Positions 38,701 through 64,000 of a DNA stretch of 64,000 nt are shown here, one piece after another (within the stretch, counting starts at the first letter, position 1; every line of letters starts with the position of its first letter). The notes below the pieces were generated by a model, which was not told where the DNA came from, did no database searches, and saw nothing but the letters and a program-made list of their open reading frames with translations. A program made the position numbers and the translations under genes. The DNA is taken from sequence record NC_048779.1; one strand, written 5' to 3'.

Positions 38701-38943
38701 GTTGGTTGTCGTCATGTCCGGTCTTGCACGGTAACGTTCAAAGTCTTTCATGAAGCGCACGGTTTTGATAGAACGTAAGGAGTCCTCTTCCCAGTGTGCC
38801 CTTAATAGTTCCTCCCAGTTGCGTTCAGGAACATCATCGGAAGGTTCATCCAGCAATTGGTCTGGAATCGTTTCTTTTTGAATATTTAAATACTTTAAAA
38901 CTTGTTCTTGTTCATTGAAATTAAATTCTAATTTGGCACCCAT
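35728..38943 (-). CDS. terL: Terminase large subunit precursor (1071 aa; 778 aa after intein removal)
   Basis: Walker A PRQQGK|T, Walker B FIDEP, ITTP, nuclease IGLDTS, HDDIVIS. Confidence 0.92.
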   Translation of the reverse strand: MGAKLEFNFNEQEQVLKYLNIQKETIPDQLLDEPSDDVPERNWEELLRAHWEEDSLRSIKTVRFMKDFERYRARPDMTTTNKSFIRTMDVFRRMGVKNCAFHLQLNNPMLVGVDPRSPDLTDDQRLMVMKEMQENFWYFLREVCHLNGGIRFRANRANISFAWCWLNHLTTMLILPRQQGKELSVDAKVKTMNGWVRNGDLKPGDVVLASDGSPVKVKRIYPQGVKPLYWVTMEDGRRVKAGLDHLWKVFDYGQEAWKVSSTKELMVGLCKGRKYSIPIAYPEHKSDVKLPVHPWLLGMILGGNGITGALTHIGNKDTKVRQKLDHILSLHDKPIVAGKEIPDEYLTASYVQRVELIQGLMDSRGEVTPTGNLLWVNEDVEFNVRLTELIRSVGGVVYSSEDGTCLEINDPALDLLVSVQHKKTMLKDNSKGVPRPTEIEVTSIEYARDEEALCIEIDHPSHLYVTDDYIVTHNTVTAQCIFFWLTYISGRAYESHLITLKDDNRQQFVDAIKGIRNNIPAWMTNVTYRDKDAGNSLTYSAFGDEVKNKLTISVPQIGQEAARNVGRGLTIKSRFIDEPAYIKWMEEILNGAGPSTLTARENARRLNEPYATGFITTPASILTESGQYMYNILMESTEWRENYFDTYGESHLYDVLLKNAPKATTSPSVGMVFNYLQLGKNRDWVKKTIDELKLSLSEAKIDLLLMWDDNGKGKLFDDETRDALNEAKRGRSWSQQISGTSLFFDWFISQEEHAEIMSGGKNSTFYLIGLDTSGAVGRDACTIVVRDIRDGSVAGVGRYQRAFLTEVGMVVQTLLMELPNSLLIPERNYAHHMIDQLLQSLPAMGLDPFKKIYNRIFQDPMRYQNHYRDIKARTFGNRNDVFYLKYKEFFGFNTGAKSREVMYGFLEEAVSLTGTGTRYTKLIDELTNLKIKNGRIDHDTGNHDDIVISWLLTYWFIKLGENKNEYGIPAGIALSNVDMLKLGETKKELSDPVKQKRIAFYRQKIEEVSAKLMETDEPVIVARLEVALDRLREMVPADVRKSITIDDIKRQAEAERNRRALESKRSKFRNR
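37522..38400 (-). mobile_element. Class 3 intein (293 aa) with degenerate LAGLIDADG endonuclease
   Basis: Starts ELSVDAKV (no Cys/Ser at position 1); block B DHLW, block F ALCIEI, block G VTHN|T (WCT triplet); PWLLGMILGGNG and LIQGLMDSRG remnants. Confidence 0.88.
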
Positions 38944-46789: not shown

Positions 46790-46822
46790 ATAACTCAGGT
46801 GGGCTAGACCCACCTGAGTTAT
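46790..46822 (-). terminator. Terminator between the two giant Ig genes
   Basis: ATAACTCAGGTGGG/CCCACCTGAGTTAT 14-bp stem. Confidence 0.8.
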
Positions 46823-46831
46823 TACTTTACA

Positions 46832-49800
46832 TTAGCTTGCAGGAGTACCGAACTTAGCCGTGTATTCCATTAATTCTACGTTGCCGTACATTAACTTGTA
46901 CACTACTTCAGACTCAGTAGGTTCGTTCACAACAAACGCCCATTCGCCATCTGGCATGACCGTCAACTCAGTTTCTGAATTATCGCTAACACGACGTGCT
47001 TTCAGCTTCAGAATAGTAGTTGGTCGGAACTCTAAACCATTGGTGTCGAGTACTTTACCTTTCACTATTGAGTCAACACCCACAGGATGATATTCAGGAA
47101 CATCAACATCGATCGCTGCGGTTACTGGTTTAATGATGTCGTTAGCGTAATCCCAGTTAACAGGGATAACACGATAGTCATTATCAGTACCCACATACAA
47201 CTCCGTTACTGAACTTGATTGTGCGGTTGCTTGGAACACCACATCATCACCCGGGTAGTCGATTCGAACCAGATTGATCACCTCTTGACGAGATTTAGGT
47301 TGGAACAAACTGTATCCCGGATTACGGATAGGTTCGTTGTTTTGATCTCTGACCGTCATGCGAACTAGGAATTTCTCCCCGTATTCGATGTTCTGCATGT
47401 TGTCGATTTCAATGATAGATTGACCGATTAACTCGTCGTCTACCCACTCCACGGTATCTGTGATGGACTTACCACCAACTTCAACGTAAACCGTATGTAC
47501 ACCTAGTCGATCACCAGACTCATCCGTTCCCGGCAAGGTGTAACTTACCAAGCCTTCAGAGTTGGTCATTTCTGTTGCAATAACTTCACCCTGAGCATTA
47601 CCCCAACGTGCGGTTACCGGAACGTCTTTGACGCGACCGTAGTTAGGTGCAAGGACGTAGAAGTGAACTTTAGCAGGTTGACCACTTGGAGCCTTAGTTG
47701 AAGAGAACGAGACCGTTTCTAGTTTCCCAATAGGAGGAATTTCCACGTTCCATGTAATCTCTTCATAACGTTCAGCATTACCCGTGAACAACACTAGCTG
47801 ATGAGTTCCTGTAGTTAAAGGACCAACTTCCAGAGTAAACCCTGTTCCATCGTTCTTCACTACAGTGGTATCCAACAACGTACCTCCGTTCAAGTGATAC
47901 ACACCAAGGTTACGACCCGGTAACACATCACCGTTCTGATCTAACAGTTTACCACTGATTGTGGCTGGTTGACCGTATTCAGCTGGAGATGACGTCACAA
48001 CATCTTGGAATGTCTTACCGACCAATTCTTCCACAGGTTTCCAATCCACCTCTGCGTCAAGTACCGAAGTACCGTTCTTAAAGTAGACCGTTGTTTTACC
48101 TGTTTCCGCTGGAGCCGGAACATTCATGGTCGCAATACCTCTGGCGTCGGTGTTCGCCGTCACCACTGCCGGATTACTTGGGTCACCCAAGTGAGCAGTG
48201 ACTTCAGTTCCCTCTACCGCAACATCACTTTGGTTCACGACTTTCACTGCCATTGTTGCCGGTTGACCCGTAGTTGCAACGTTAGCCGAATAAGGCATTT
48301 CATCAATGATGTTGTCTGCGGTCACTACCAGAGAGTAAGTCCCTAGGTAAGTCTTATCTGGTGCTGATATGTCGACTTTGTGAGTACGGTACTCAGGGAA
48401 CCATACTTCAACTTCGAACGTACCATCCGTTTTAATGGTACCCGTAAAGGCGTCACCATTATCCCCAGTTGCTGTACACGCGGTATTAGACAACGGAGTG
48501 AATGGGCTACCATCACTATCCACAAACGTACCGTGTAGACTAACTCTACCGTTACTCTTCGTCATTCTAGGAATGTTGTTGTCAAACACCACACGTTTCA
48601 TGTCAGCGTTATTCAAATCCCAGATGATCGTCTCATCGAAATGACCGGCATCGGTGAAGAGTGAGATAGGGTAGTTACTATCAGCCTCAGGACCATACTC
48701 AAACTCAAACGTACCGTCTGGTTGTAGTCGATCGATGTAATCATGGTTCTCCAAGGTAATCGTGTTAAAGATACCCAACGTTGAAGCCGTTGTGATTGGA
48801 TTGCCTTCTTGATCAACTAGCTGACCACGTACCGTCGTTGATTTTCCTGAAGCAGGGCGGTTATCCATGTAGAGACGAGTAAACCCGGTCGCATACTTAG
48901 TTACCGCAGGATACCACGTAATGTCTAACGTCTCTGTCAGTTGATCCAGAGTCGCTTCGATAGTACGGTTATCGTTGCCTGCTTCATAAGGGATAGCGTA
49001 AGACGCTAAACCACGTACGTTAGTCGTTAGTGTCGCAATAGGAGTTTCTGAACCCTGATCTCTAATTACGATCTGAGCATCCTGAACCCCAACACCGTCT
49101 TGGTCTTTCACGTACAACTCAATGTTAGCCTCGTTGTTTTGAGTTTGCTTACATTGTGAGGTGCCAACAAACGCCATCGTGTTTGACGTTGCCACGGTCC
49201 ACGCAATACTCAAGTTGGCCACCGGTATGTCATCATTGCCACCGAATCGGTAGGTGATGCTAGCGTTGGTGTTGTGTGTAACTGTTGTGCTGAATGAACC
49301 ATCTGGACCTGTGGTTAGTGCAGGTTGTGCGTCGCCAGAGATCGCCCATTGAACCTGAGCGTTTGCGATTGGATCACCGTATTGATCGTAACCTTTACCA
49401 CTGATGGTTAAGTTTTCGCCAGAGAACCCTGAAGTAGGATTACCTTCATCTAACTCAACGCGATTCAGTTCTGGGTCAGTGCGTTCAATGTACTCGATAC
49501 TGCGTTCAATGCGTTTACCGTTGATGATGAAGTAGAACTCATTCACCCCTACTGTAAACGGACCAATATTAAAGTCGAACGTACCATCCGGTTGTACATC
49601 GGTGGCATGACTGGTGTGAGTTAATAAACCACGATGGTAAATCTCGAACTTAGTTGTTGATGTCCCATTGTTCTGTTGGTTGATTAACTTACCTGTTACT
49701 TTCGCTAATTCACCATCGTAAACCGTTGCCGGGGTAGTTAACCCTTCAAACGCCACGTCGATAAGTTCATTAGTTGGTTTCCAAGTCGCTGTTACTGCTT

Positions 49801-52800
49801 CTACGACACTTCCTACTTTAATTTCAAAGTTAGAAGACATTGTCCCGGATTGGTAAGGCACTGAATGTGTTACCATTCCTTTGACATCCGTGTTTAATGT
49901 AGCGAGTGTGTTTCCGCCGGCTAGTTTAAACGTCACCGGGAGTTTAGGGATAGGGTTCCCTTCGCTATCTTTCACCACAGTACTCAGTACCACAGGGTCA
50001 CCTATCTGAGGTGTAGTGACCGATAACACACTCACGTCGTTTAACGTCACGTTGTCACTGTGACGAAAGGACTTTACCACAACGCTCGTACCATTAAGTT
50101 TGAAGTCGTAGTTTTCTGTTCCTGCTGCTGTTGGTTTAACCAGTACGCGGAACGTCCCTTTGCTAACATCTAAGTCTAGGTAGCTCTCCTTACCACCCAC
50201 AGTCATTGTCGCCTTAACGTAGTGGTCCAGTTCAGTCACTGGAACTCCGTCTACCGCTAATTTACCGCTTAACGTGTTCCATTCACCTACTACTAATGAT
50301 TCCGGAGAATCCGCGTCGAACACTAAGTCGTTTGGCGTGACTGCCGGTTTACTTTCCCATGTCACCGAGAACTCTTGACGACCAGCGTCAGTAGTTAAGA
50401 TGTAAGTCTTAGTTCCTGTTCCGCTATGCGCAAAGTCCAGTAAGTGGGATTTAGACTCACCAGTGGTTACACGGTTAAACAATACCTGATCCAATATTTC
50501 CGGATCAAAGATACCTACCGTGGACAACGGACGAGGGTTACCGTCACTTGCTACTGCTTGAACACTGACTAACGCACGCTCACCTTCAGGTACTGGGTTA
50601 GTAACCGTTAAGTTAGCGAATCCAGTTGGAGGTGTAAGTGGATCGTTAGCCCACCACTGACGACGTTCCTTAACAAGGTCACCGTACTTAGCGTAGATCA
50701 AACGGTTAGCGTTACTTCCTTTCTGAGGAACGTTAAACTCAGCAATACCAAACTCGTTGGTAGTTACAGTTGTTAACAGTGTGCCCGATGCCGAATCCAA
50801 GTGCAGAGCAATAGGAACACCTGCAATGCCCTTACCTGAACTATCTAAAGCGGCGAATGGTACAAACGCGGTTTGTCCCGGTACTGCATTAGAGTCAGAA
50901 TAGCGCATGACCTCAATTGAATCCACTGGGAGTTTCCACTCAACAGTATGTCCAATACGAGCAACGTCTGGTTCCCAACCAAATTCGTAAAGCACTGGAC
51001 CTGCTTCAGTTGAAGTGTAATCCAGACTCCAAGAACCACCCGGAGGAGAACGGAAGGCGTTTTGTGGTTCGCCATTAATGAACGGTCGTACTGAAACGCC
51101 ATCGATCGGATCGCCGTATTGATCCAAAGTAACCGCAGTCAGTTTCACAGACTCACCAACCATCCCTTCGGTAGGTTGTTCACCAACCCACTCAATAGAG
51201 GTGAATACCGGTGCCGCTTCCTCAACTGTGATTGTGACCGATCCCAAGTACTTACCTTGATAAGTATGGAAGTCAAACAACACATCCCCTTCATCACTAA
51301 AGGTGTAAGCAAACGACCACGTACCGTCCGGTGTAACTGTGAACTCGTAGGTGTTACCCTCACTGCTGTTTACGTAAACCGTGATACTCTTAGCTGGTGC
51401 AATTGGATCACCAGCGCTATCCAAGATGGTGCCTTGGAGAGTATGTGTGGTAGCAACGTTAACCTGAGTAGGAACACTCGCATCCAACTTAACCGCTTTC
51501 AGGTCTTCGTTTTCCGCATCCCAAGAAATACCTCTGATAGAACCCACATTGCCTTCAGTAACAAGGCTGTAGTTGTAAGTACCATCTGGTTTGACTGGGA
51601 GTTCGATATCGAACGTACCATCTGCTTGAACTTGTGCAGAGTAATCCGTTAAGTCAAACGACCCTTGATCGAACACTTTAAGGAATTGTGGACCTGCTAA
51701 CGGTGTGCCGTCTTGATCTACAACTGTACCTCGTAGTGTTGCTGTTGTGCCGGAAGCCGGTTTAGTGTCAACCACGTAACCAGTTCTTGAAGTCTTACGA
51801 CCAAATCCAGCCGCGATCTTAGGATCACTACCTACCCAAGACAACGTCAAGGTATCTTGAATACCGCCCAACTTAGCAGTGATTACTACGTCACCCACTT
51901 CAGTGGCTTCTTTAGGCCAGTAACCAATGTAGGTCTCACTGTAGATGTTTTCAGTACCCAGAGGGTCACCAGAAACATCACCTTCATAGAACTCCACTAC
52001 ACGTCCGGTAACGCTTTCTCCGTTCTCATCCACCACTCGGATTGATACATAAGCATCATCACCGACAACGGCCTTAGGTTGAGAGTCTGCGTTAAACACC
52101 AAGCTTACCGTCTGACACCACTTGATGTCTACCGTGTCGTAAGTGTTTTCTCCGACCTTAAAGGTAAAGCTTTGAGTTTCCACTTGATCATTCGTCGGCT
52201 TCACGCTGAATGTACCGTCAGTATGAATCGTGCCTTGGAACTCAGTAGTCTCATCCAGTACCAGTGTGAACAATTCTTCAACGATTGGTCGGTAAAGTTG
52301 GTTCATGGTGTTGTACACTTTACCCGTTAATGAGAAGTCTTCGTTCAGACCCACTTTAACTGTACTAGGGACATCAAAGTTGCGTAAAGTACCCGCACCT
52401 TCAAAGAACTCAACAGCATGGGTCGCTAGGACTGTCTCACCATCTTTAAAGGTATATGTGATGGTTTCACTTACGTCATGAGTCGCATTAAAGGACCAGT
52501 TACCTTGTGCATCGATTACCGTTGGAAGAACATCGTCGTTTTTGTCATTCACAACATCCAGAGTGTAAATTCCTTCATCTGGTGTGAACGGTGTCCCGAT
52601 GGTATCCGTGGAGCTACCAAAGATCTCAACTGTGTCACCTAATAGACCGCGAGTGCCGCTATCAGGATCAATTTCGATGCTTGCTAAGATACCACTACCT
52701 CCCCAACGCGTCGTTTGACGATCGATGTTACCTAGTGTGGCGAAGATCAACTCATAGGTCTTAAACGGATAAGGACCTAACTCTACACTAAACGTACCGT

Positions 52801-55800
52801 CTGGTTGAATGTTGTCAGTCAGTACAGTGTTAGTCATCTCCGTCTTGTTGTAGACCGCGAGTTCACCGTTAGCGTAAGGATTACCGTCTTGATCTAAGAT
52901 CTTACCAGTAATTACTGCTTTGTCGTCTCCTACTACCTTCTCAGGCACCACTAAGGTTTCAAAGCGGTCACCGGTTAACTCAGGTGACTCTACCCAACGG
53001 ATTAATAACGACTCTCCGGTCACACCACCGTTGTAACCACTCGACATCGTAAACTCAGGGAAACTTTCGTCATGGTTCCAAGTTACTTCTGCCATGCCAT
53101 TAAAGTCACTCTTAACGTTGACTTTATACTCGAAAGAGTTTCTTGCACCCGGAGTAAATGTCAGGCACGCGTCAGGCACTACGTCCCCGTTACCATCTTT
53201 AACAATCACCCCTACGGTTGCACTTCTTCCTTTAGCTGGCTTAGGTGTACTGTAAGGTAACAACGTAACGTTAAGTTGATCGTAGTAATTGATTTCTTGA
53301 GTATCAATCACCACACCGTCAACCTTAAAGTTGTAAGGATGTTTACCGGCTGGTTTACCTTCTCCCAACTTAGCAACAAATCGACCTTTCGGTGTGATGT
53401 AAACTGGGTGGTTTTGTGTGTCAGAAATTTGAGCTTCCACATAACCGGTAAGTACCGCGGTATCCCCTGACCCATCGATAGCCGTACCATCAATCCACTG
53501 ATCAAGGTTGAATCGGATAAACGCATTACCACTGTTATTGAGTGTGTTGAATCGTGTTGGTTTAACCAACGCGGTATCCTCATCCCAAGTCATTGTGGTT
53601 ACCATCGCCGCGTTTTCACCAAAGATCACCAATTCATGATCACCTGAGGTTTGTGTAGGAACACGGTATAGGTTGAAACGTTCGCCGTAGATATCAAGAT
53701 CACTTTCTATTTCAGTTAATACGATCTCTTGAAGTGTTCGCTTGTCAAAGGCACGAATCACAGCGCCAGTTACATGTGACTTCGTTTCCCATGGAGTAAC
53801 ATTACCGCCCGGGTCCGTTGCGGCTGGACCAGACGCATAACTCATGTGTGATAGAGGACTGAGTTTAATCACACCGTCTTCACCATCCGCCACATGTCGA
53901 GTCGCTTCAAAACCATGCAGCTCTTCAACCACTGGATTTGTCACACCCCATTCAACAATGGCGTTTGCTGAAATACCTTCGCTCACAACAAAATAAGTCA
54001 GGTCACCAGAATTAGGAGTGTCTGGATTATCGTTTACCATAAACTCAACAATACCGAACTCATCGGTAGTTTTAGTATCCACCAATAGTCCTGTATCACT
54101 TCCTAAGCGTAGTTCTATTGATTGACCTACCATTGGTTTGTCTACGGAGTTAATGCCGGCAAACGCAAGCGTAGCGCTTCCTGTTTGTTTAACTTTACTG
54201 GTCGAATAAGGAAGTGTACGGAGTTCTTTAAGTACGATAGGTGCTTCGGTCACAAACACCGTGCTAGGGATTACAGCGCTGTTCGTCGCAAACACCAATT
54301 CGTTTGCACCAAGATCATAAGGACCGATGTTGATGTCAAACGTGCCATCGCTGTTGATGTTGCCGTTGAACATCTTTCCACCTAGAGTGGACTTGTTAAA
54401 CACCACCAACCACATGATAGAAGTGTCGGATTGACTTAAATTACCAACTAACTTACCGGTTACCTGAATAGGTTGACCGACGTAGGTTTGAGGACTGATC
54501 ACTAGGTCAGCGATTTCAATTGCTGAATTCTCAGTATCGGACGCCCAACGAATGGTGCGGTTGTCTTTTAAGTCTGTGCCGTTAATAAACGCAGTCACTT
54601 CATCTTGCGGTGTACTTGGTGTAGTAATAGTATCTGGGTTGTAACTTAAAACAAGTTCAGCCACACCAAACTCATCCGTTACCACCTTACCGTAATCCAC
54701 ACCTGCGTCGTAAGTGTTTGTAAAGTTAACCAACATCCCCTCGATGCCATTAGAGTCAGCATCTTTCACCACAACAGCCAAGGTAGCGTTGTGGGTCTTC
54801 GCAACTTTGTCACCAGTGTAATTAGCGAATTCAATCACCGGGGAAGCGATAAACTCTACTTGGTGAACGTAAAGGTTATTGCCGTCGTCTAAGATGGAGT
54901 AAGTCTTAGTCTTAATGGTATCGGACGTTGCTTCAAAAGAGAACGACCCAGATGGCCCCACTTTAACTTTAACTGTCGTCGCATTCTCGTCACGGATGGA
55001 AAGTTCCATTTCTTCCACAGGACGAACAACGTTACCTTCACTGTCAATGATTGAGCCAGATACCGTAACCACAGTGTCAACAACTGCTGATGTCGGTGAG
55101 GTAGGGTCCAATTGGATACCAGCAGGTTCATTGGCAGTAGCACCACCCCAAGTTAATGACAGCTTACGTTGAGCATTCCCGCTGTAGAATACCACATCGT
55201 GGTCTCCGTCCGGCATGGTAGGGAAAGAAACTGAGTAAGTCCCTTTAGCATTCTCAGTGATTTCAGCAAGGTAAGATTCGTAGAAGAAACTGTTCAGAAC
55301 CACCACACCACAATCGGCAAGGTCACCTTTCGTTCCATCTTGGTTTAATGCTTCTAGCTCAATTGATAAACGCCCGCCAGTGTTAACTGGGTTAGTGTAA
55401 TCGAAGTAACCAAACTCACTGATTACGTCACGATCGTTCACCCACGTTATACCACTAGATTCCGTATTCGGACCCATAACACAACGAACTTCGTGATAAC
55501 CACTTAGTTGAACACCATCAATTTCTGGTGGGAGTGAATACTCCACTATCCCGTTATCGTCAGTTAGTTTCGTTTCCAGTTCTTTCCATTCCCCGTTTAC
55601 ACGAACAGACAGACTTGCCGGAATACCAACTACAGGAATTAATTTGGCGTCTTCAATCAAGCTTGCACGGTAAGCAACTAACCCTTCATCACCAATGTAG
55701 ATGTTCGGGTAAGAAGAATAGTTCAAACGTTCAGTACGTAAACCCGGAGGGAAACCGATCGCCCATTCTGTTGCTTTCTCTAAAGTAACACCAGTGGTAC

Positions 55801-57421
55801 CAAGAACAAGGTTGTGCTTACCTTTTTCTAACGGACCAAAGTCAAAAGAGAAAGTACCGTCACCGTTAACCGACGACATATCCACTGGAGTATGTCCTAG
55901 CGTGTGTTTGTCGAACACTCCTAAGCGAGACGGTTTAAACCCATTCCCGCCTTGATCGTAAATACGACCGCTAATGGTCATGGCGTTTACGGTGTCACCC
56001 ACACTAGGGAAGGACATGTTACGGAATTCACTAGCCACAGAAGAACCACTGAAAGAGACTTCATGGTCAGCAGACTTGCTTCCAAACTCAACACCCGTTC
56101 TCACTGAGGTTGCGGTTCCGTTTTTAGAAACCGAAGTCTCCACAATACCGAACTCATCGGTCACGGCTTGTCCGTAACCATCCGGGTCCCAAGTTACAAT
56201 CTGAGCGTAAGGAATACCCTTACCTTCTGCATCGAGTAATGCAAAAGCGACGTCACCAGTACCGTTGGTGTAGAGTGTTGTGACAGAATAAGGAAGAGTC
56301 TTTAATTCAGCAGCAGCGATGAATTCACCTTGGTGTGTAACAACTTCTTCACCGGCGGTGTTTTTGATTATTTCCGTTACGGTTTCACCCACTTCCCCTT
56401 TAATGGAGAAAATGAAAGAACCATCAGGGTACATCGAGACCGTTCTTACTTGACCATCTTTGTCTTCTATCCCAATAGTGGTGAATTCAGTTGGAGTGTG
56501 ATTACTACCGTCTGATTCTAAAGCTTGACCGTAGATGTTAGACCAACTTCCGCTTGGGTAAAACTTAGCATTCCCCATTGGGAGTGTTACGTCATGAATG
56601 TCCGGATTAGGGAAGGTACCAGACTCTACCGTAAACTCAATGAACTGACCTTCGGTATACGCGACTAAGTGGTGTTTACCTTCCGGTAGTGAGTCGAACG
56701 TATGTAGGAACCCATCTACATTAATTGATTCTTTTTGCGTAGTAACGCTTTCTAAAGTGTCTTTGTTAAAGATATCAATATCGGAAACCCATAATGGTTC
56801 ACCGGCTGCATCTAAGATAGTGCCAGAAACACTACCACGTCCGATGGCATTGATTTTCTCAATGTATTTAAAGTCGCCGATTCCGAAGCGACCTTCTTCT
56901 TCACCATCTTCCCACTGCATGTAGTTGCTGTTAATGTTACCACCTGCTTTCGCAAAATAGTTGACATTAACTGGTGAGTTTTCACGAGGAGTTGTGTATG
57001 TTGCTATACCAAATCCATCAGTTTTAACTGTCGCCACTGGCTCGGAGTTTTCGTCGTCGCGGTGGATGGTCACATCCGCATAGGGAACCCCATTACCTTG
57101 GTCGTCTTTTACCGCAAATGCGATAACACCAGTGTTACCAACTTTAATGCGGAAATTAGAATACGGCAAGGTTACTACTTCAGCTGTTTCAATGAAACGC
57201 ACCGCGTGCGCACCTACATCTACTCCATTGTAAATAAAAGTGAAGTCGACCTGAGAGTCGACTTCAGCGTTCACTTCTAAGGACCAATGACCAGAATCAT
57301 TGGTCGTGATAGTCACATCAGGTAGGCCGTCCGATCGGACGGCCTTTAATGTGACGGGTTTACCCGGGTTTACTTCGTTGCCTTCAGCATCGAGTAAGTT
57401 CCCTCTGATAATACCTGCCAT
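46832..57421 (-). CDS. Giant Ig-like repeat protein, 3529 aa; putative fibre or adhesin
   Basis: Cyclic A-B-C units: LPYS...AF...DxxG...TDEFGI; FxxLxxP...G...DQxG...DGTF...GP...HxLV; IxxD...GxxxDxxG...DGxFSF. Confidence 0.82.
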   Translation of the reverse strand: MAGIIRGNLLDAEGNEVNPGKPVTLKAVRSDGLPDVTITTNDSGHWSLEVNAEVDSQVDFTFIYNGVDVGAHAVRFIETAEVVTLPYSNFRIKVGNTGVIAFAVKDDQGNGVPYADVTIHRDDENSEPVATVKTDGFGIATYTTPRENSPVNVNYFAKAGGNINSNYMQWEDGEEEGRFGIGDFKYIEKINAIGRGSVSGTILDAAGEPLWVSDIDIFNKDTLESVTTQKESINVDGFLHTFDSLPEGKHHLVAYTEGQFIEFTVESGTFPNPDIHDVTLPMGNAKFYPSGSWSNIYGQALESDGSNHTPTEFTTIGIEDKDGQVRTVSMYPDGSFIFSIKGEVGETVTEIIKNTAGEEVVTHQGEFIAAAELKTLPYSVTTLYTNGTGDVAFALLDAEGKGIPYAQIVTWDPDGYGQAVTDEFGIVETSVSKNGTATSVRTGVEFGSKSADHEVSFSGSSVASEFRNMSFPSVGDTVNAMTISGRIYDQGGNGFKPSRLGVFDKHTLGHTPVDMSSVNGDGTFSFDFGPLEKGKHNLVLGTTGVTLEKATEWAIGFPPGLRTERLNYSSYPNIYIGDEGLVAYRASLIEDAKLIPVVGIPASLSVRVNGEWKELETKLTDDNGIVEYSLPPEIDGVQLSGYHEVRCVMGPNTESSGITWVNDRDVISEFGYFDYTNPVNTGGRLSIELEALNQDGTKGDLADCGVVVLNSFFYESYLAEITENAKGTYSVSFPTMPDGDHDVVFYSGNAQRKLSLTWGGATANEPAGIQLDPTSPTSAVVDTVVTVSGSIIDSEGNVVRPVEEMELSIRDENATTVKVKVGPSGSFSFEATSDTIKTKTYSILDDGNNLYVHQVEFIASPVIEFANYTGDKVAKTHNATLAVVVKDADSNGIEGMLVNFTNTYDAGVDYGKVVTDEFGVAELVLSYNPDTITTPSTPQDEVTAFINGTDLKDNRTIRWASDTENSAIEIADLVISPQTYVGQPIQVTGKLVGNLSQSDTSIMWLVVFNKSTLGGKMFNGNINSDGTFDINIGPYDLGANELVFATNSAVIPSTVFVTEAPIVLKELRTLPYSTSKVKQTGSATLAFAGINSVDKPMVGQSIELRLGSDTGLLVDTKTTDEFGIVEFMVNDNPDTPNSGDLTYFVVSEGISANAIVEWGVTNPVVEELHGFEATRHVADGEDGVIKLSPLSHMSYASGPAATDPGGNVTPWETKSHVTGAVIRAFDKRTLQEIVLTEIESDLDIYGERFNLYRVPTQTSGDHELVIFGENAAMVTTMTWDEDTALVKPTRFNTLNNSGNAFIRFNLDQWIDGTAIDGSGDTAVLTGYVEAQISDTQNHPVYITPKGRFVAKLGEGKPAGKHPYNFKVDGVVIDTQEINYYDQLNVTLLPYSTPKPAKGRSATVGVIVKDGNGDVVPDACLTFTPGARNSFEYKVNVKSDFNGMAEVTWNHDESFPEFTMSSGYNGGVTGESLLIRWVESPELTGDRFETLVVPEKVVGDDKAVITGKILDQDGNPYANGELAVYNKTEMTNTVLTDNIQPDGTFSVELGPYPFKTYELIFATLGNIDRQTTRWGGSGILASIEIDPDSGTRGLLGDTVEIFGSSTDTIGTPFTPDEGIYTLDVVNDKNDDVLPTVIDAQGNWSFNATHDVSETITYTFKDGETVLATHAVEFFEGAGTLRNFDVPSTVKVGLNEDFSLTGKVYNTMNQLYRPIVEELFTLVLDETTEFQGTIHTDGTFSVKPTNDQVETQSFTFKVGENTYDTVDIKWCQTVSLVFNADSQPKAVVGDDAYVSIRVVDENGESVTGRVVEFYEGDVSGDPLGTENIYSETYIGYWPKEATEVGDVVITAKLGGIQDTLTLSWVGSDPKIAAGFGRKTSRTGYVVDTKPASGTTATLRGTVVDQDGTPLAGPQFLKVFDQGSFDLTDYSAQVQADGTFDIELPVKPDGTYNYSLVTEGNVGSIRGISWDAENEDLKAVKLDASVPTQVNVATTHTLQGTILDSAGDPIAPAKSITVYVNSSEGNTYEFTVTPDGTWSFAYTFSDEGDVLFDFHTYQGKYLGSVTITVEEAAPVFTSIEWVGEQPTEGMVGESVKLTAVTLDQYGDPIDGVSVRPFINGEPQNAFRSPPGGSWSLDYTSTEAGPVLYEFGWEPDVARIGHTVEWKLPVDSIEVMRYSDSNAVPGQTAFVPFAALDSSGKGIAGVPIALHLDSASGTLLTTVTTNEFGIAEFNVPQKGSNANRLIYAKYGDLVKERRQWWANDPLTPPTGFANLTVTNPVPEGERALVSVQAVASDGNPRPLSTVGIFDPEILDQVLFNRVTTGESKSHLLDFAHSGTGTKTYILTTDAGRQEFSVTWESKPAVTPNDLVFDADSPESLVVGEWNTLSGKLAVDGVPVTELDHYVKATMTVGGKESYLDLDVSKGTFRVLVKPTAAGTENYDFKLNGTSVVVKSFRHSDNVTLNDVSVLSVTTPQIGDPVVLSTVVKDSEGNPIPKLPVTFKLAGGNTLATLNTDVKGMVTHSVPYQSGTMSSNFEIKVGSVVEAVTATWKPTNELIDVAFEGLTTPATVYDGELAKVTGKLINQQNNGTSTTKFEIYHRGLLTHTSHATDVQPDGTFDFNIGPFTVGVNEFYFIINGKRIERSIEYIERTDPELNRVELDEGNPTSGFSGENLTISGKGYDQYGDPIANAQVQWAISGDAQPALTTGPDGSFSTTVTHNTNASITYRFGGNDDIPVANLSIAWTVATSNTMAFVGTSQCKQTQNNEANIELYVKDQDGVGVQDAQIVIRDQGSETPIATLTTNVRGLASYAIPYEAGNDNRTIEATLDQLTETLDITWYPAVTKYATGFTRLYMDNRPASGKSTTVRGQLVDQEGNPITTASTLGIFNTITLENHDYIDRLQPDGTFEFEYGPEADSNYPISLFTDAGHFDETIIWDLNNADMKRVVFDNNIPRMTKSNGRVSLHGTFVDSDGSPFTPLSNTACTATGDNGDAFTGTIKTDGTFEVEVWFPEYRTHKVDISAPDKTYLGTYSLVVTADNIIDEMPYSANVATTGQPATMAVKVVNQSDVAVEGTEVTAHLGDPSNPAVVTANTDARGIATMNVPAPAETGKTTVYFKNGTSVLDAEVDWKPVEELVGKTFQDVVTSSPAEYGQPATISGKLLDQNGDVLPGRNLGVYHLNGGTLLDTTVVKNDGTGFTLEVGPLTTGTHQLVLFTGNAERYEEITWNVEIPPIGKLETVSFSSTKAPSGQPAKVHFYVLAPNYGRVKDVPVTARWGNAQGEVIATEMTNSEGLVSYTLPGTDESGDRLGVHTVYVEVGGKSITDTVEWVDDELIGQSIIEIDNMQNIEYGEKFLVRMTVRDQNNEPIRNPGYSLFQPKSRQEVINLVRIDYPGDDVVFQATAQSSSVTELYVGTDNDYRVIPVNWDYANDIIKPVTAAIDVDVPEYHPVGVDSIVKGKVLDTNGLEFRPTTILKLKARRVSDNSETELTVMPDGEWAFVVNEPTESEVVYKLMYGNVELMEYTAKFGTPAS

Positions 57422-57431
57422 TTATTATTTC

Positions 57432-60400
57432 CTATTTAGTGATTAACGCCACACGGTTAGAGCTTTCATCAATCCCAACAGAGTCAAAATTAACAAAGCT
57501 TGAATCCCAGCGCACAACGTGCTCTGAAATTTCAGCACCCGTGTAAACTACTAAATGATGGTCACCTTCGTCCAAAGGACCTAGTTTAACACTAAAGCTA
57601 CCATCCGAGTTCACGGCATTTTCGTGGAAAGTATGAGTGGTCTTATCGTAAATACCTACCCCATTGTAATCAGTGAGCGCACCGGATTTATCCAATACTT
57701 CACCGACTGCTTCCACTTCCGCACCAATCTCCACTTTAGTAGGGATTGATAGGTCACGGAAAGAAGTACCTACTTTAACAGTATCCTCAACCCATGTTAG
57801 GTTATGGATGGCAAGTGGAACAGTTTCCCCTAAGATGCCGGTAACCGTATCACTTGATTTGGCGTCGTTGTAAGGTAACGTGACTTTCACAATACCGAAC
57901 TCATCGGTGGTGAGTGTTCTAGGAACGTTACCCGGACCCGGACTACCAACAGCCACTAACACATTACGGTATTGGATTGGTTGGTTGCCATCTTGTTTAT
58001 AGATCAACCAAACTTCACCAGATTCACCTTGAGGTACTTCGTCGAAAGAGTAAGGAGCAACCGTCACCGATGCGTTCTCCACCCATTCGATTTCGATGGA
58101 GTCGTCAATGACATCACCTAGTTCACGGTAAAGTGAGTAAGTGTAAACCCCTCTACTCTCACTAGTTAGTGTCATACGAATCGTACCGTCCGGCATGATG
58201 TTGGCATCTGCCTGTGGCCCTTCATCTGTACGCACTGAAAGCTTCTCAGGGATGCGTGGTGTGTACAACGCACCATTGGACTGGTAGATCTTACCTGTAA
58301 CAGGGAGCTCTTCTCCGGCAATAACAGCGGTAGGTAGTTGATCAACATCCCACTCGATATACGCACCGGTGATGTCTGGGACCGCCCACTCGACCGTATG
58401 AAGTTCGTTGTTCACTTCGTTGTAAAGTACGATGTCTTTAGTAACGAAAGTGTCATTGATCATGTACGCTGTAAACTCACCCGTAACCGAGTCTTGCTCA
58501 CGGATAGACACAGGGATGTGTTCGAACGTACTACGATCGTAACCACCCAGTATGATGCCCGTGCTAACGTTATCTGGAATTAACGGGTCACCGTTTTCAT
58601 CCAACATCACACCAGTGAATAACAACTCTCTTCCGTAGGTAATTGCAGGGACAGACATTTGCGTCATGGTTACACTGATGCCAGTCTCGTCGCTCCATTT
58701 AACAACTACTTGAGCTTCTTTCAGACCTAGTGAGGCGAAGAACACACCGTGCTTCTCGTCTTCTAAGTAAGGTGCTTCGTAAGTCGCGATACCATGCTCA
58801 TCTGTAACGATGGTTCCTAGCTGACGCTCAGGCGAATAGATGGTAGACGTTTGGCGAACATTCAGTTCCACACCCGGCTTACCTTTACCGTCTTCATCCA
58901 GCACGTACCAACCAATAACACGGTTCATGCCGTAAGGAACACGGAACAAACGATCGTCGCTTGGTAACGCCGTAACCGTTATGTCGCCAGTGAAGTTGAT
59001 GGTGTAAGAACCTACCGCGCGGTTGTTAGCAGAGAACCCGTAAGTTGTACTGCCTGATTTAATACCTACCGCTTTATAAGTCCAATTACCATTGCCGTCT
59101 GATTGAGCTTTCTCAATAGTACCCGCAAATTCCACTTCAAATTCAAATGGAATACCCGGTAAGTAAGCTTCATCATGTTGGTCGAAAGTTTTGCCACTCA
59201 GGGTTACTGACTCACCAACTTTACCCGTTACCGGTAACCCGTCATCAAATGTAATCTTCGCAAGGCGTGGTGGTTCACCCATCCAACGAATGCTGTGACT
59301 ACCTTGATTACCGTTTTCCAGACGGAAAGTAAAGGTGGTTTCTTCCCAGTCACCGTAAGGTCCAACTTCCGCTTCAAAGCGTCCATCGAAACCAGCGTAG
59401 ATGATCGTCTCGTCGGCATCCTTCAACTCCTTCATGTAAACCGGAGTACGGCTATCACTTGTGAAGTTGTTGCCTTCTTCATCCACCAACTGACCCGCAA
59501 TACGGACACTCGTACCCGCCGGTGCTTCAGGGACGTTATCAGGACTCATCACGATGTCGTGTGCGATCTTAGGTGCTTCTGTCCACTCCACGTTGCCAAA
59601 GGCAAAGCTGTTGTCAGTCCACACCACCACTTGGTAAACGTCACCCGGTTCCTTAGGAGAACCTGTCAGCTCGTATTTACCTGCGCCTGCGGTGTTAGCT
59701 TCAGCGTAAGGTTGCCATAACGGACCGTAACCGATATTAACTTTAACACCGTCAACCAAATCACCGTATTGGTCATAAACCAAACCTTTTACAGATAAAG
59801 GTTCATTTCCAACAAACGACATGTCTTCCACGTCTAAGGTAATACGGTCACCGTAAGGTTCAGTTTCTACCCAACGGATTAGGTGCTCATGACGGTTACC
59901 CATCACAACCAGTTTAAAGGTAGTGCGGTCTTGTCCTTCTTTACGGATGCGAGTAAGTAAGAACTTACCTGTTTCATCAGTCGTCTCACGACGGATAGAA
60001 TCCAGATCATCATCCATGTAAGAGAAGAACTCAGTATCACGCAGAGGTTGACCTTCACTGTTCAGCAATTGACCGTAAGCACGACCCGCTTTGTTGATAC
60101 TCACTTTAGTAGGAGTGTACGGGAAGAACTCACCAACTTGTTGTTCCGGGTTAGACGTGATGCGAATGTCTTTACTTAAGAAGTAATCCGGAAGTTCACC
60201 AGCGACCTCAAAGTCAAACTCAAACGTTTCCGTTGCCCCACTCACACGTTCAGACCATGTGAAGAAACGGAACGTGCCGTCTAAGCCAATGTCGACCTTA
60301 CGAGGGGTTGTGTCGTGTTGAACACCACCTTTCACCAACATCTTAGTCAGACCGTCGGTCACCAACGCACCTTTCTGATCATAAACGCGACCAGAGAACT

Positions 60401-62195
60401 CGATCATTTGAAGCTCACCGATGCTGTTAGGAACGGAGGTATCAAACTCGATAGTAGTTGGAACTGGTGTTTCAGTATCCGGGCCTTCAGTGACGTCAAT
60501 AGAGATACCCGTAGTGGCTAGGATTAAACGATCACCTTGGATGGACTCGTGTATCCAACGAACGTAGATCGTACGACCTTGAGGCTCTTGGACATCCAAC
60601 CACATTTTCTCTGCATAACGGCTGATTTCGTACTCATACGTTTTACCAGACGTAGCTAAGATCTCAAAGTGAGTTGGTTCAATCGGACCTTTCTCACGTT
60701 GTGGGTTAAAGCCCGGTTCCACAGCACGATAGACTTGATCTAAGAAATCTTCTAAGTCATCATACTCACCACCGAAGGTGATTTCTTGACGACCATCCGC
60801 TTGGTTAATCGCTTTGAACGTTGGGTCAGAGTAAGAGGAACGATCGTAAGAATAACGAACATCGAACTTACTGCCGTCTTCAGTACCCGGTGCCTTCAGT
60901 ACGAACGTGGTCGATTGACGCATGATCATAGGTTTAAAGGTCGGAACCACATCACTGAGTCGACAGTTCAACTCCAGTGTTTGCTCTACACCGTAAGTGG
61001 TAGGACGGAAAGCCGGTGACATTTCGTTAATACGAACGTGATCGGTGGCGTCAATCATGAACTTACGATCTAAGTCGGTCAGGAAGTGTTTCAGAATATA
61101 CTGACCGTTCACCCAAGTAGGGTAAGAGTAAAGCTTAGGTGAATAAGCTCCATCAAACGGAACCGCTAACAACCAATAAGAACTACGGTATTGGTTAGGG
61201 TTGCCCGGCTGGGCTTCGTAGATGTGCTCATCTGCATCCAAGTTGTAAACTAGGGTTAATGTCCCACGTTGACTCGGAGTGGATGGTTTGTGTTCATTCA
61301 AACCCAGTAATTGAACTTTCTGACCATCAATCGCCAATTCATCTGAACGAGAACCATCACTGTAGTGAACCATTGCACGGAACGCTAGGTTCTGTAACAT
61401 GGTGTTAACTGGAACGTTCAATGTTTTCGGGTCACTGGTATTCAGGAACCAAGGGGCAAGTAGTTCAACATGTTTAATGTAACGTTTACCAACTTGATGG
61501 TCACGCAACATTGACGTATGTTGGACAGTAAGCGTTCGTGCTTTAGGAATTACATTACCTTTAGCGTCATACCAAACTAAGGTGGTACGCGAACCATCAG
61601 GTAGTTCGTCTGGGTTACGGTTCACTGAGAAAGGCTGTGTAATCATAATCTCTTTATTAGAGAGCTCATGATAAGCCGCCAGTGTAACCGGTACTCGGTC
61701 TGAAACTAACTGGTTGTTGTTAGAATAAACTACCGAGATAACTTTACCTTTGTCCCCAACGGTGTTGCCTTCGTAAAGTAACGCGTAAGCCGCACCCGGT
61801 GCCATGACCTGACCATCAATAACCGCACGGTTAGGACGTACAGAGTAGTCGATCGCAACGATGGCCTCACCTTGGAAACCAGAAGGTAAACCAAAGATGC
61901 CATCAACATCATTACCACCATCCCCAGTATTAAAGATAGGTTGGAGTGTTGATTTTAGATCCGATTCCCAGTTGACATGAGTAACCATGTACATTTGCTG
62001 AGCCTCAGGATCGAGCACCATTTCTTTTTCTCGGGGAACCACATAACGATGTGCTTCGCCCGGCTTCACTGTATCAGGATCGTAGATATCCCAAATGTAG
62101 TGAAGACGTCCACGGTCATTTTCATTAGGGAGCTGTGGACCAGCTCCCGGAATGACGGATGACTGAGACGGACTTTTTAAATCTTTCTCAAACAT
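57432..62195 (-). CDS. Putative virion protein (~1587 aa): conserved-looking N-terminal ~580 aa fused to ~10 Ig-like units
   Basis: Start revised to MFEKDL (SD GAGG, overlaps upstream TGA); repeats begin near PTTIEFDTSVP. Confidence 0.78.
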   Translation of the reverse strand: MFEKDLKSPSQSSVIPGAGPQLPNENDRGRLHYIWDIYDPDTVKPGEAHRYVVPREKEMVLDPEAQQMYMVTHVNWESDLKSTLQPIFNTGDGGNDVDGIFGLPSGFQGEAIVAIDYSVRPNRAVIDGQVMAPGAAYALLYEGNTVGDKGKVISVVYSNNNQLVSDRVPVTLAAYHELSNKEIMITQPFSVNRNPDELPDGSRTTLVWYDAKGNVIPKARTLTVQHTSMLRDHQVGKRYIKHVELLAPWFLNTSDPKTLNVPVNTMLQNLAFRAMVHYSDGSRSDELAIDGQKVQLLGLNEHKPSTPSQRGTLTLVYNLDADEHIYEAQPGNPNQYRSSYWLLAVPFDGAYSPKLYSYPTWVNGQYILKHFLTDLDRKFMIDATDHVRINEMSPAFRPTTYGVEQTLELNCRLSDVVPTFKPMIMRQSTTFVLKAPGTEDGSKFDVRYSYDRSSYSDPTFKAINQADGRQEITFGGEYDDLEDFLDQVYRAVEPGFNPQREKGPIEPTHFEILATSGKTYEYEISRYAEKMWLDVQEPQGRTIYVRWIHESIQGDRLILATTGISIDVTEGPDTETPVPTTIEFDTSVPNSIGELQMIEFSGRVYDQKGALVTDGLTKMLVKGGVQHDTTPRKVDIGLDGTFRFFTWSERVSGATETFEFDFEVAGELPDYFLSKDIRITSNPEQQVGEFFPYTPTKVSINKAGRAYGQLLNSEGQPLRDTEFFSYMDDDLDSIRRETTDETGKFLLTRIRKEGQDRTTFKLVVMGNRHEHLIRWVETEPYGDRITLDVEDMSFVGNEPLSVKGLVYDQYGDLVDGVKVNIGYGPLWQPYAEANTAGAGKYELTGSPKEPGDVYQVVVWTDNSFAFGNVEWTEAPKIAHDIVMSPDNVPEAPAGTSVRIAGQLVDEEGNNFTSDSRTPVYMKELKDADETIIYAGFDGRFEAEVGPYGDWEETTFTFRLENGNQGSHSIRWMGEPPRLAKITFDDGLPVTGKVGESVTLSGKTFDQHDEAYLPGIPFEFEVEFAGTIEKAQSDGNGNWTYKAVGIKSGSTTYGFSANNRAVGSYTINFTGDITVTALPSDDRLFRVPYGMNRVIGWYVLDEDGKGKPGVELNVRQTSTIYSPERQLGTIVTDEHGIATYEAPYLEDEKHGVFFASLGLKEAQVVVKWSDETGISVTMTQMSVPAITYGRELLFTGVMLDENGDPLIPDNVSTGIILGGYDRSTFEHIPVSIREQDSVTGEFTAYMINDTFVTKDIVLYNEVNNELHTVEWAVPDITGAYIEWDVDQLPTAVIAGEELPVTGKIYQSNGALYTPRIPEKLSVRTDEGPQADANIMPDGTIRMTLTSESRGVYTYSLYRELGDVIDDSIEIEWVENASVTVAPYSFDEVPQGESGEVWLIYKQDGNQPIQYRNVLVAVGSPGPGNVPRTLTTDEFGIVKVTLPYNDAKSSDTVTGILGETVPLAIHNLTWVEDTVKVGTSFRDLSIPTKVEIGAEVEAVGEVLDKSGALTDYNGVGIYDKTTHTFHENAVNSDGSFSVKLGPLDEGDHHLVVYTGAEISEHVVRWDSSFVNFDSVGIDESSNRVALITK

Positions 62196-64000
62196 GTTTA
62201 ACCTCGAAGTGTCCATTCGTGTTAACTCGACTCTGTAAGAAAATCTCATTAACTCTTTGGATAAAGATGAGTTCCTTAGGAGACACTGCCACTAAGGTTT
62301 GTTGAACGTAAGGGAATATCGCAAAGTAGCGTCGATCGTATTCACGGGTTACAGGGTCGTGCTCTAATAACCATTGGAAACTTGCTGTCTTCCGTAATAC
62401 ATAGTCTTCAGAGTAAGATTCACCCGGAGGTAGGTCGTCCAGTTGAATAATACCTAAAAGTAACTGGTTGACCACCGCATTCATAAATGGACTGAATACT
62501 CGGTATTTATCCATCAACGATGGAATAACCTGAGGCTCAGGTTTACGAGCAAATAACGTTAAGTAGTCACTCATCCGCTTATCTTGATCCCGTGCTTCTT
62601 CCCATCCTGCCGTCAAGTCGTAAGGGACCCAATTGCGGAGAGGAAGATACCAGTGTTTAACCCCATAAGGTAACCCGTTGTACGGGTTAAGCAGTTCACT
62701 CGGAGCATGATGTTCCGCCGCAGGGACCTTACTAGGGTCCCAAACCTTACCGCCGATAGTCGTACGAGTAACACGGTCTTCACGCAAGTTATAACGTGTG
62801 TTATGACCAATTACGCCACCCATGACGTACCCAAGTTCAGTTTGCTCCAATGGTTCGGTTTCACCCACTGGGCTCCACTCACTACAATAAAGAACAAAGT
62901 CATTACCATCGGCCTTTAAGTACTGATGGTTGACAATGTAAATGTGAGGGAAACGCACCACGTAGTCAACGTTCTCAATTAAGGAATGACGATTCATGAT
63001 CACCATGATGTTAGCCGGAGCAACATCAGTCAACATACCACCTTGGGCCCATTCTTCAGTCACACTGAAAGATAAGGAATTATCAATGTGATCCAAAGTA
63101 AACTCTTTGTATAACGTTTGGTCATTATACAAAATCATTCCAATGAACATTGAACTCGGTAATAACCAAACCACTTTACCAGTTGTACGATCGAAAGTGT
63201 AATGTTCCCCTTCAACTGCACGGTAACGCTCACCGACTAAGTTGCCTTCCGTTGTTACTTTCTGGTAATAGAAGCGCGGTGTGGTTTCTTTGTCTACCAC
63301 CATTGGGTCTCTACCGATATCCATGTGAACGCGTAACCCCGGTTTCCCCGGGTAGAACTCAACCAAATGAGTATCGCTCGAAGGGAGCACATGACGTATC
63401 TTTTCAAAGTCACGCATTCTCAGGAACAGTCCATCTTTGTCGTATTCAAACATAGTTAAATGTTCACGACACGCGGGAGGAACATCGAGTTCCATTCCTG
63501 ATTCCGGGTCGTAAGTGAATGGTGTTCCGCATAACACTTGGGTGGCGCGGTTGTAACCCACAGCAGTTACTGCCTGTTCGTGTGTTAAGTCCCCGTAGTT
63601 GCGATCTAAGTACAAGTTCGTTTCTGCGTTTTCCAATTCACGAGCCGACCATTCTTTCATGGTGGAGTTGATACCGATTAACGCTCCCATGATACCGTCA
63701 TCGTTCATTCGGTATAAATAACGGACGCCGCTGGACTCGTACTGCATCTCTTGAGCGTAATCGTTTTTACGGTAGATCAGACGAAGGTAACGAGTTTCGT
63801 TTTTCAACATGTCCTCTAAGTTACCCATGTCATCCACTAACGTTGCATCCACCGAATAGTCACAATGAGTGAGTTGTCGGAAGTTAGATGCACGATTTCG
63901 GTGAAGGTAAATGCCACGCCCATTTTTATCAACCAAATAAAAAGAAACATCGGTCACATAGCGGTAGGAGAAATCCCCTTCCACCTTCTTAGGATGAACG
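62188..64000 (-). CDS. Partial putative virion structural protein (5' end outside window)
   Basis: The frame is open to the window edge (...VHPKKVEGDFSY); phiKZ-like structural-gene context. Confidence 0.7.
   Translation of the reverse strand, partial: VHPKKVEGDFSYRYVTDVSFYLVDKNGRGIYLHRNRASNFRQLTHCDYSVDATLVDDMGNLEDMLKNETRYLRLIYRKNDYAQEMQYESSGVRYLYRMNDDGIMGALIGINSTMKEWSARELENAETNLYLDRNYGDLTHEQAVTAVGYNRATQVLCGTPFTYDPESGMELDVPPACREHLTMFEYDKDGLFLRMRDFEKIRHVLPSSDTHLVEFYPGKPGLRVHMDIGRDPMVVDKETTPRFYYQKVTTEGNLVGERYRAVEGEHYTFDRTTGKVVWLLPSSMFIGMILYNDQTLYKEFTLDHIDNSLSFSVTEEWAQGGMLTDVAPANIMVIMNRHSLIENVDYVVRFPHIYIVNHQYLKADGNDFVLYCSEWSPVGETEPLEQTELGYVMGGVIGHNTRYNLREDRVTRTTIGGKVWDPSKVPAAEHHAPSELLNPYNGLPYGVKHWYLPLRNWVPYDLTAGWEEARDQDKRMSDYLTLFARKPEPQVIPSLMDKYRVFSPFMNAVVNQLLLGIIQLDDLPPGESYSEDYVLRKTASFQWLLEHDPVTREYDRRYFAIFPYVQQTLVAVSPKELIFIQRVNEIFLQSRVNTNGHFEVKHV

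Follow-up and report, generated by a model that had tools for sequence, protein, structure and literature searches.

Beta-sandwich domains that are incomplete by themselves and are completed by a strand of a neighbouring subunit are known from bacterial pili. In chaperone-usher pili, an immunoglobulin (Ig)-like subunit lacks its C-terminal G strand and is completed by the N-terminal extension of its neighbour, a reaction that needs a periplasmic chaperone and an usher. Beta-sandwiches of the same broad fold class that have been cut into a strand and a remainder, as in SpyTag/SpyCatcher and split CnaB, still reassemble. The T4 long tail fibre (gp34-gp35-gp36-gp37) is built of adjacent-gene products joined non-covalently, with conserved attachment ends and variable distal parts. 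In the type V pili of Bacteroidia (FimA/Mfa1), C-terminal donor strands replace the N-terminal strand of the acceptor in a protease-mediated process (PMC13655056). Among the jumbo phages, the DUF7941 proteins of Goslar form head-to-tail oligomers in which an extended segment joins the beta sheet of the next protomer's N-terminal domain, and these have been proposed to be long host-finding filaments (PMC13742148). The baseplate rim of phiKZ carries star lobes built of gp26 and gp27, with five gp26 per lobe; gp26 cross-links the lobes and docks through its C-terminus, either to the gp157 ring or to the gp130/gp139 interface (PMC13250141). Here we describe a locus at which one Ig-like repeat unit is divided by the boundary between two adjacent phage genes, gp161 and gp160, with the repeat register kept. 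It lies in a 64,000-nucleotide (nt) stretch of record NC_048779.1, hereafter the window, which corresponds to Vibrio phage USC-1 and Vibrio phage 5 TSL-2019 at 100% identity (Gorgonvirinae, Aphroditevirus). USC-1 is a Chimalliviridae-type jumbo phage of ~238 kb and a relative of the nucleus-forming phiKZ-like phages. We refer to the orphan piece that ends gp161 as the tail and to the first domain of gp160 as the head (Table 1).

The giant protein gp160 contains ~36 Ig-like units of the Big_1 or macroglobulin (MG) type, mostly in the order C-A-B (it begins C A B C A B A B C A B), and matches the Pfam Big_1 model with 101.8 bits at a cut-off of 34.9. In gp161, an N-terminal module is followed by ~10 Ig-like units (C A B B C A B C A B) and then by the tail. 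Since these unit maps, which come from iterated profile searches started with three seeds, end ...C-A-B in gp161 and resume C-A-B... in gp160, the three-unit period continues past the stop codon. The boundary was placed within the unit on a register profile of 133 positions, built from 35 non-identical internal copies, each with 48 upstream residues, of USC-1 and eight related genomes; the copies were chosen for their likeness to the gp160 N-terminus. On this profile the W that ends the preceding unit falls at position 24, a hydrophobic-x-hydrophobic-D motif at 33-36 and an xGxhhD strand at ~51-57. When the last 70 residues of gp161 are aligned to it, they cover positions 2-45 and leave three residues over, which puts their end at ~48; for the first 100 residues of gp160, the alignment begins with residue 4 at position 51, which puts their start at ~48 as well. 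The two ends therefore fit to within about one residue, and the same fit was obtained in four divergent genomes (USC-1, 2 TSL-2019, phiKT1019 and one metagenomic relative). Counted from the W to the xGxhhD strand, 29 residues lie across the split, compared with 27-30 in four internal copies. If the two ends had been placed independently and uniformly, a fit to one residue together with an unbroken C-A-B order would arise, by our estimate, ~1% of the time. The original prediction, which had been made from the letters of this DNA, held that a domain is split here without loss of register; the peptides it quoted are all present, in genes on the minus strand, and the fit at ~48, the 29-residue spacing and the unit order bear it out.

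The tail corresponds to the linker and strands A and A' of an internal C unit (profile positions 25-48). AlphaFold2 was applied to residues 1-900 of gp160 (mean predicted local distance difference test score, pLDDT, of 80 with a six-sequence alignment) and to the last 420 residues of gp161 (mean pLDDT 63, one unit being poorly predicted). Every A, B and C unit inside the gp160 fragment was predicted to have eight strands. The last unit of gp161 was also predicted with eight, ending at the W, and two more follow it: SVGID, which carries the hydrophobic-x-hydrophobic-D motif of the internal units, and RVALI. Hence the orphan piece, previously taken for a single strand, is predicted to comprise two short ones. 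The strands of the head were predicted at residues 2-8, 24-29, 36-39, 45-51, 56-64 and 67-76 (pLDDT 71-84), so that the two strands of the tail and the six of the head add up to the eight of an internal unit. In an uninterrupted copy of the same unit (gp160 residues 759-870), a 9-residue linker precedes strand A (768-771), A' (778-780) and B (785-792), and the chain then runs on to G. In the Big_1 alignment, residue 8 of the head falls at model position 24. Taken together, the profile and the models place the start of gp160 where strand B of the unit begun in gp161 would begin, to within ~1 residue. The C-terminus of gp160 is a head-like unit that has its own A and A' strands in cis. A sequence search of the PDB with the head gave no match. 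With the C-terminal model of gp161, Foldseek returned C3 MG domains, E. coli alpha-2-macroglobulin, InvD, InvE, FdeC and titin (E values of 1e-9 to 1e-7), with template-modelling scores that are low since the chains bend.

The reading frames at the junction bear on whether the two pieces could be parts of one chain. The coding sequence of gp161 ends ...ALITK with a TAG codon at 57434-57432, and is followed by a 10-nt spacer, GAAATAATAA (57431-57422), and by the ATG of gp160 (57421-57419), which opens ATG GCA GGT in the +1 frame relative to gp161. Two TAA codons stand directly before this ATG in its own frame, and frame-0 read-through of the TAG runs for ~15 codons before it meets a TGA. Consequently no frameshift, read-through or hop joins the products and, judged from the frames, gp161 and gp160 are made as two separate polypeptides. 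The 10-nt length and the paired in-frame TAA codons had been predicted correctly, as had the exclusion of a frameshift fusion; the AGGA Shine-Dalgarno motif, which had been placed wholly in the spacer, instead straddles the gp161 stop codon and lies only partly within the spacer. The layout of TAG, 10-nt spacer and AGGA would fit translational coupling of the two genes. That gp161 and gp160 are a single protein after all, the stop being a sequencing error or being bypassed by frameshifting, read-through or hopping, is extremely improbable. Only the short spacer and the continuous repeat register speak for it. It is opposed by the closed frames just described, by the presence of the same stop, spacer and start in nine independently sequenced genomes, and by the possible AAA landing sites for a hopping ribosome, which lead to a stop or into the wrong frame.

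The nine genomes that carry TAG, exactly 10 nt and ATG are those of USC-1, 5 TSL-2019, Aphrodite1, PDCC-1, 2 TSL-2019 and phiKT1019 and the metagenomic contigs L020, L021 and L022; one or two stops of the downstream frame directly precede the ATG. Over the first 300 fibre residues, L020 and L021 share only ~40% identity with USC-1, yet they have the same junction. No fused form of gp161 and gp160 was found among 1.84 billion representative proteins. The conservation of the split that had been proposed as a check is therefore observed in these nine genomes, the fused ORF in close relatives that would have spoken against the prediction did not appear, and the Tidunavirus relatives also keep the two kinds of protein separate. 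A phmmer search of the same protein set with the head gave 15 matches, in which the true relatives all have the head at residue 1 and internal matches occur only in unrelated Ig-repeat proteins; the head is a distinct small family. A search for relatives of the anchor, capped at 8000 candidates, gave at least four proteins. A scan of IMG/VR with the head alignment recovered only six isolate genomes, all already known, and a tighter alignment found no relatives of the head in JGI metagenomes.

Within their repeat arrays, the tail and the head are the best conserved parts. Expressed as the mean of USC-1 against four orthologues, identity is 0.82-0.86 in the head, the most conserved part of gp160, and 0.13-0.56 in the fibre just beyond it; it is 0.73-0.78 in the last 90 residues of gp161 and 0.52-0.67 in the units before these. 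At the DNA level, similarity to PDCC-1 and 2 TSL-2019 ends 90-130 codons into gp160. The tail is invariant or nearly so among relatives, with VALIT invariant in every Aphroditevirus-type relative, and its proportion of nonsynonymous differences (pN ~0.11) compared with that of synonymous differences (pS 0.62-0.75) indicates purifying selection. A conserved attachment end and a fast-changing distal part are, to judge by sequence, the usual pattern of an attachment domain and its partner.

Some further features of the head-coding region were noted. At window positions 57241-57266 on the minus strand, ~155 nt after the gp160 start, this region contains a hairpin with a perfect 11-bp stem (GAAGTCGAC...GTCGACTTC) and a T-rich run behind it. 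The stem is kept and the loop varies in Aphrodite1, PDCC-1, 2 TSL-2019, phiKT1019 and L022, and the hairpin is absent from L020 and from the Tidunavirus phage VP4B. It might reduce transcription of the giant gene by attenuation, or it might have arisen as a side effect of the EVD..VDF codons. Synonymous divergence is lower in the head (pS 0.40-0.52) than just downstream (0.78-0.81). The representative protein library also holds a 34-residue protein, P0021, whose first 22 residues are as in the gp160 head and whose remainder diverges; rather than a real short protein, it most likely reflects gene calling on a short or frameshifted contig.

The N-terminal module of gp161 indicates where such an attachment might be. 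Residues ~30-570 form a peripheral-baseplate module like phiKZ gp26: residues 46-561 align to residues 30-544 of the 552-residue PHIKZ026 chain (PDB 9xqd_a, E 5e-46), and gp161 matches phrog_3430 at E 1e-141. Directly upstream, as in phiKZ, is a gp27 homologue, gp162, which matches a Goslar peripheral-baseplate chain (PDB 11pb_C, E 3e-59) and PHIKZ027 (9xqd_G, E 4e-30). Since the two genes are homologous to PHIKZ026 and PHIKZ027, gp161 can be regarded as a baseplate-rim anchor extended by ~1000 residues of Ig-like units. The phiKZ protein has 552 residues, no Ig-like stalk and no orphan strands, and phiKZ is without head-bearing giant proteins. The open reading frame (ORF) of gp161 that is obtained mechanically starts at 62249 and encodes 1605 residues, a product that scores 28.6 bits with Big_1, under the cut-off; the start is most likely at 62195 (MFEKDL...), as annotated in all relatives. 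The 62249 start would overlap gp162 by ~60 nt and the 62195 start overlaps it by 8 nt, the latter being another layout of the translational-coupling type in the same operon (window 62188-62249). On the minus strand the genes read gp162, gp161, gp160, a strong terminator-like hairpin, gp159 and the large terminase. No terminator was found between gp161 and gp160 and, because of the hairpin after gp160, these two genes look like one transcription unit that ends there.

We consider that the tail of the anchor completes the head of gp160 in trans, by strand completion, with a probability of roughly one half. On this reading, which the original prediction had also put forward and which accounts for the function most economically, gp161 and gp160 would be co-transcribed and their synthesis coupled through the 10-nt spacer, and the six-strand head would fold with an open edge. 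The C-terminal A and A' strands of gp161 would then insert into this edge and rebuild the eight-strand sandwich, A pairing with B and A' with G if the usual Ig-like topology holds. A stalk of ~10 units would thereby be joined non-covalently, end to end, to a fibre of ~36 units, giving a filament of ~45 domains that starts at the baseplate rim. If the docking is real, its polarity would be that of type V pili, with a C-terminal donor in place of a missing N-terminal strand, and the product would likewise be a non-covalent head-to-tail filament of beta-sandwich domains. Unlike the pilin, whose N-terminal strand is made and then cut off by a protease, the phage acceptor never encodes the strand, which would be missing genetically. 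Moreover, the pili are homopolymers of one pilin, whereas in the phage two different, adjacent genes would be joined once, and assembly would take place in the cytoplasm of the infected cell. No pilin family appeared among the Pfam or Foldseek results, where the matches were to MG, invasin and titin-type units; the phage pair is therefore not a member of the FimA/Mfa1 family and is at most similar in its working. Chaperone-usher pili share with the proposed pair an Ig-like subunit that lacks a strand and obtains it from a neighbour. The phage split has the reversed polarity, with N-terminal strands missing and a C-terminal donor, and involves two strands; to our knowledge it has no chaperone- or usher-like helpers.

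Other fibre and ligation systems also differ. The T4 fibre consists of trimeric beta-helical rods joined via whole terminal domains, and no domain is divided between genes. SpyTag/SpyCatcher is engineered and locked by an isopeptide bond. A lock of that type was looked for and rejected at the USC-1 junction: the head has no invariant Lys and the last residue of the tail is K or E, so nothing points to a covalent bond. The Goslar DUF7941 proteins are, like the anchor, from the peripheral baseplate of a member of the Chimalliviridae, but they belong to a different domain family and use whole domains and a disordered linker, with no domain divided by a gene boundary. The Pfam matches of gp161 and gp160 did not include DUF7941, the presence of this model in the Pfam set used being unconfirmed.

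The homology of the anchor to gp26 raises another destination for the tail. The Ig stalk might fold back and bring the tail to a different protein of the baseplate, where it would dock and cross-link the rim as gp26 does, the giant proteins being mounted independently. The C-terminus of gp26 is indeed the docking element in phiKZ (PMC13250141), and the N-module of the anchor is a clear gp26 homologue with a gp27 homologue upstream of it. However, the tail is not homologous to the gp26 C-terminus, as the gp26 match stops near residue 561, ~1000 Ig residues before the tail, and docking elsewhere leaves unexplained why the tail matches exactly what the first domain of the next protein lacks. We regard this arrangement as improbable.

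A stronger challenge to docking comes from the history of the repeats. The split could be a relic of fission, in which a longer gene was cut inside a unit or a head-bearing gene was duplicated; the head would then be a self-sufficient CarboxypepD_reg-like domain seated on some other baseplate partner, and the tail a terminal hairpin or cap. Several results weigh against docking here. Since any fission keeps the register automatically, the fit of the two ends shows common origin and not, by itself, function. The Pfam CarboxypepD_reg model starts at residue 4-5 of the head, which may thus be a complete domain of that type, and AlphaFold2 folds the head by itself with fair confidence. The two predicted strands of the tail could also form a hairpin by themselves. 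Scored alone, the 24 residues of the tail reach 4.4 bits against the A/A' part of the profile, a value also attained by 28 of 2000 shuffled sequences and, among 2000 24-mers drawn at random from the giant proteins, by 110; because this score is weak, the assignment of the tail rests mainly on position, spacing and predicted strands. The tail-head contact is itself a proposal from sequence and single-chain predictions, and gp160 is a putative virion protein. The same head domain, moreover, opens proteins that have no tail upstream. Residues 1-82 of gp159 are one such copy (39% identical, E 6e-18), and gp159 follows the blunt end of gp160, a terminator and a 147-nt gap. Nevertheless, we think a mere relic somewhat unlikely. 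The tail has been kept, with VALIT invariant and a low pN/pS, over a divergence that scrambled most of the fibre, and all internal units keep A and A', the head alone being without them. Two kinds of C-terminus occur in the family, a blunt one just past the final strand (position ~25) and one that ends in a partial unit (positions ~48-59), and every tail-bearing protein is followed by a head-bearing one.

A second junction also argues against a relic. In L020 and L021 the giant protein likewise ends in a tail, at position ~49, and after 16 nt a third protein begins, near position 37. The arrangement resembles a second split, with the unit cut at almost the same place, although the head of the third protein brings its own A', which does not favour docking. 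The junction (L020 21110-21175 and L021 23384-23449) is again tight, with a GAGG in front of the ATG, and the third protein has 1444 or 1451 residues; it lies where USC-1 has the blunt end of gp160, the terminator and the 147-nt gap.

The Tidunavirus phages (VP4B, pTD1 and phiKT1028) show a different layout. Their anchor, of ~2483 residues, ends in a partial unit made up of A, A' and part of B (position ~57). After a gap of 125-129 nt that contains a terminator, it is followed by three to five proteins, each of which opens with a head. Three points in these phages tell against docking. Their tails run ~8 profile positions into a strand B that the head already has; several of the head-bearing proteins follow a blunt-ended protein and a terminator; and heads outnumber tails, phiKT1028 having five head-bearing proteins and one clear tail. 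Together with the A' that the third protein of L020 and L021 brings, the overlap means that complementarity is exact only at the Aphroditevirus-type junction between anchor and giant protein. A single fission or fusion event between the genera was considered and rejected: collinearity between the Tidunavirus anchor and gp161 extends as far as the last B unit, from which the Tidunavirus protein goes on with an A unit and no C unit, so that the two layouts differ by more than a stop codon. The gap was also inspected for leftover coding sequence and holds a hairpin and an AT-rich motif, with no domain remnant. In all three phages (L006 27504-27632, L007 27516-27641 and L008 27486-27610) the terminator hairpin is GC-rich, and the conserved AT-rich motif, AATTTAATTAACCTAATTAA, lies after it, ~12 nt before the start codon; the motif may be a phage late promoter or a leader element. 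The head-bearing Ig-array genes of phiKT1028 are consecutive (171504-193793, L023/L024), encode 1636, 1657, 759, 853 and 1188 residues and sit between anchor and terminase, where USC-1 has two, so that their number and length change quickly between close relatives.

The head is common to gp159 and to two to five head-bearing proteins in related phages. The tail of the anchor may therefore serve them all as a socket partner, so that a single conserved anchor could carry a choice of variable fibres. If the copy number of phiKZ gp26 is a guide, a virion would have ~30 anchors; their strands might complete the head of any giant Ig-array protein of the phage, and the virion might display mixed, interchangeable and very long fibres. 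We put this extension forward tentatively, as a possibility that is more doubtful than the docking of gp160 itself. If true, it would be a natural split-domain coupling with the polarity of type V pili in a virus, and it would explain why gene splits recur at the same point of the unit.

In the literature searched, we found no description of a domain whose pieces lie in two adjacent phage genes and are kept over long divergence, and nothing relevant on strand complementation in phage fibres came up. In that on Gorgonvirinae, Aphrodite1, pTD1, PDCC-1 and USC-1 we found no virion proteomics, fibre morphology or mention of these genes. If the pieces reassemble, they would explain how fibres of thousands of residues are attached to the baseplate rim in nucleus-forming jumbo phages, and why the first domain of such a fibre stays constant while the rest changes fast. 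They would also provide a compact natural pair of peptide and domain in a fold class on which protein ligation tools are already based. If they do not, the locus still offers a clean case of gene fission within a repeat array, and one that can be dated.

Table 1. Features of the gp162-gp159 region, in window coordinates.
Feature	Position	Strand	Details
Orphan tail of gp161 (DSSFVNFDSVGIDESSNRVALITK)	57435..57506	(-)	24 residues, following the W at the end of the last complete unit
Predicted tail strand A, SVGID	57468..57482	(-)	AlphaFold2 DSSP, residues 405-409 of the 420-residue fragment, pLDDT ~65
Predicted tail strand A', RVALI	57441..57455	(-)	AlphaFold2 DSSP, residues 414-418 of the 420-residue fragment, pLDDT ~65
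TAG and 10-nt spacer GAAATAATAA	57422..57434	(-)	AGGA at 57433-57430, 8 nt from ATG
Head domain, gp160 residues 1-80	57182..57421	(-)	six predicted strands, B to G, without A and A'
Internal reference C unit, gp160 residues 759-870	54812..55147	(-)	contiguous copy of the split unit
gp161, anchor gene	57432..62195	(-)	1587 residues and stop
gp160, giant fibre gene	46832..57421	(-)	3529 residues
gp162, upstream neighbour	62188..64000	(-)	860 residues in the full genome; cut by the window edge
Intrinsic-terminator-like hairpin	46790..46822	(-)	15-bp stem, then T run, directly 3' of gp160
gp159, second giant Ig-array gene	39032..46684	(-)	2550 residues

Two observations concern other genes. In phiKT1028 (L008 6742-8783), a putative homing endonuclease gene separates two annotated pieces of thymidylate synthase, which is uninterrupted in VP4B and pTD1. 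The large terminase of USC-1 lies directly after the fibre genes, at window positions 35728-38943 on the minus strand, and has 1071 residues. Its match to phrog_2 covers 604 profile positions over 973 residues, which implies ~370 residues of insertions relative to typical terminases.

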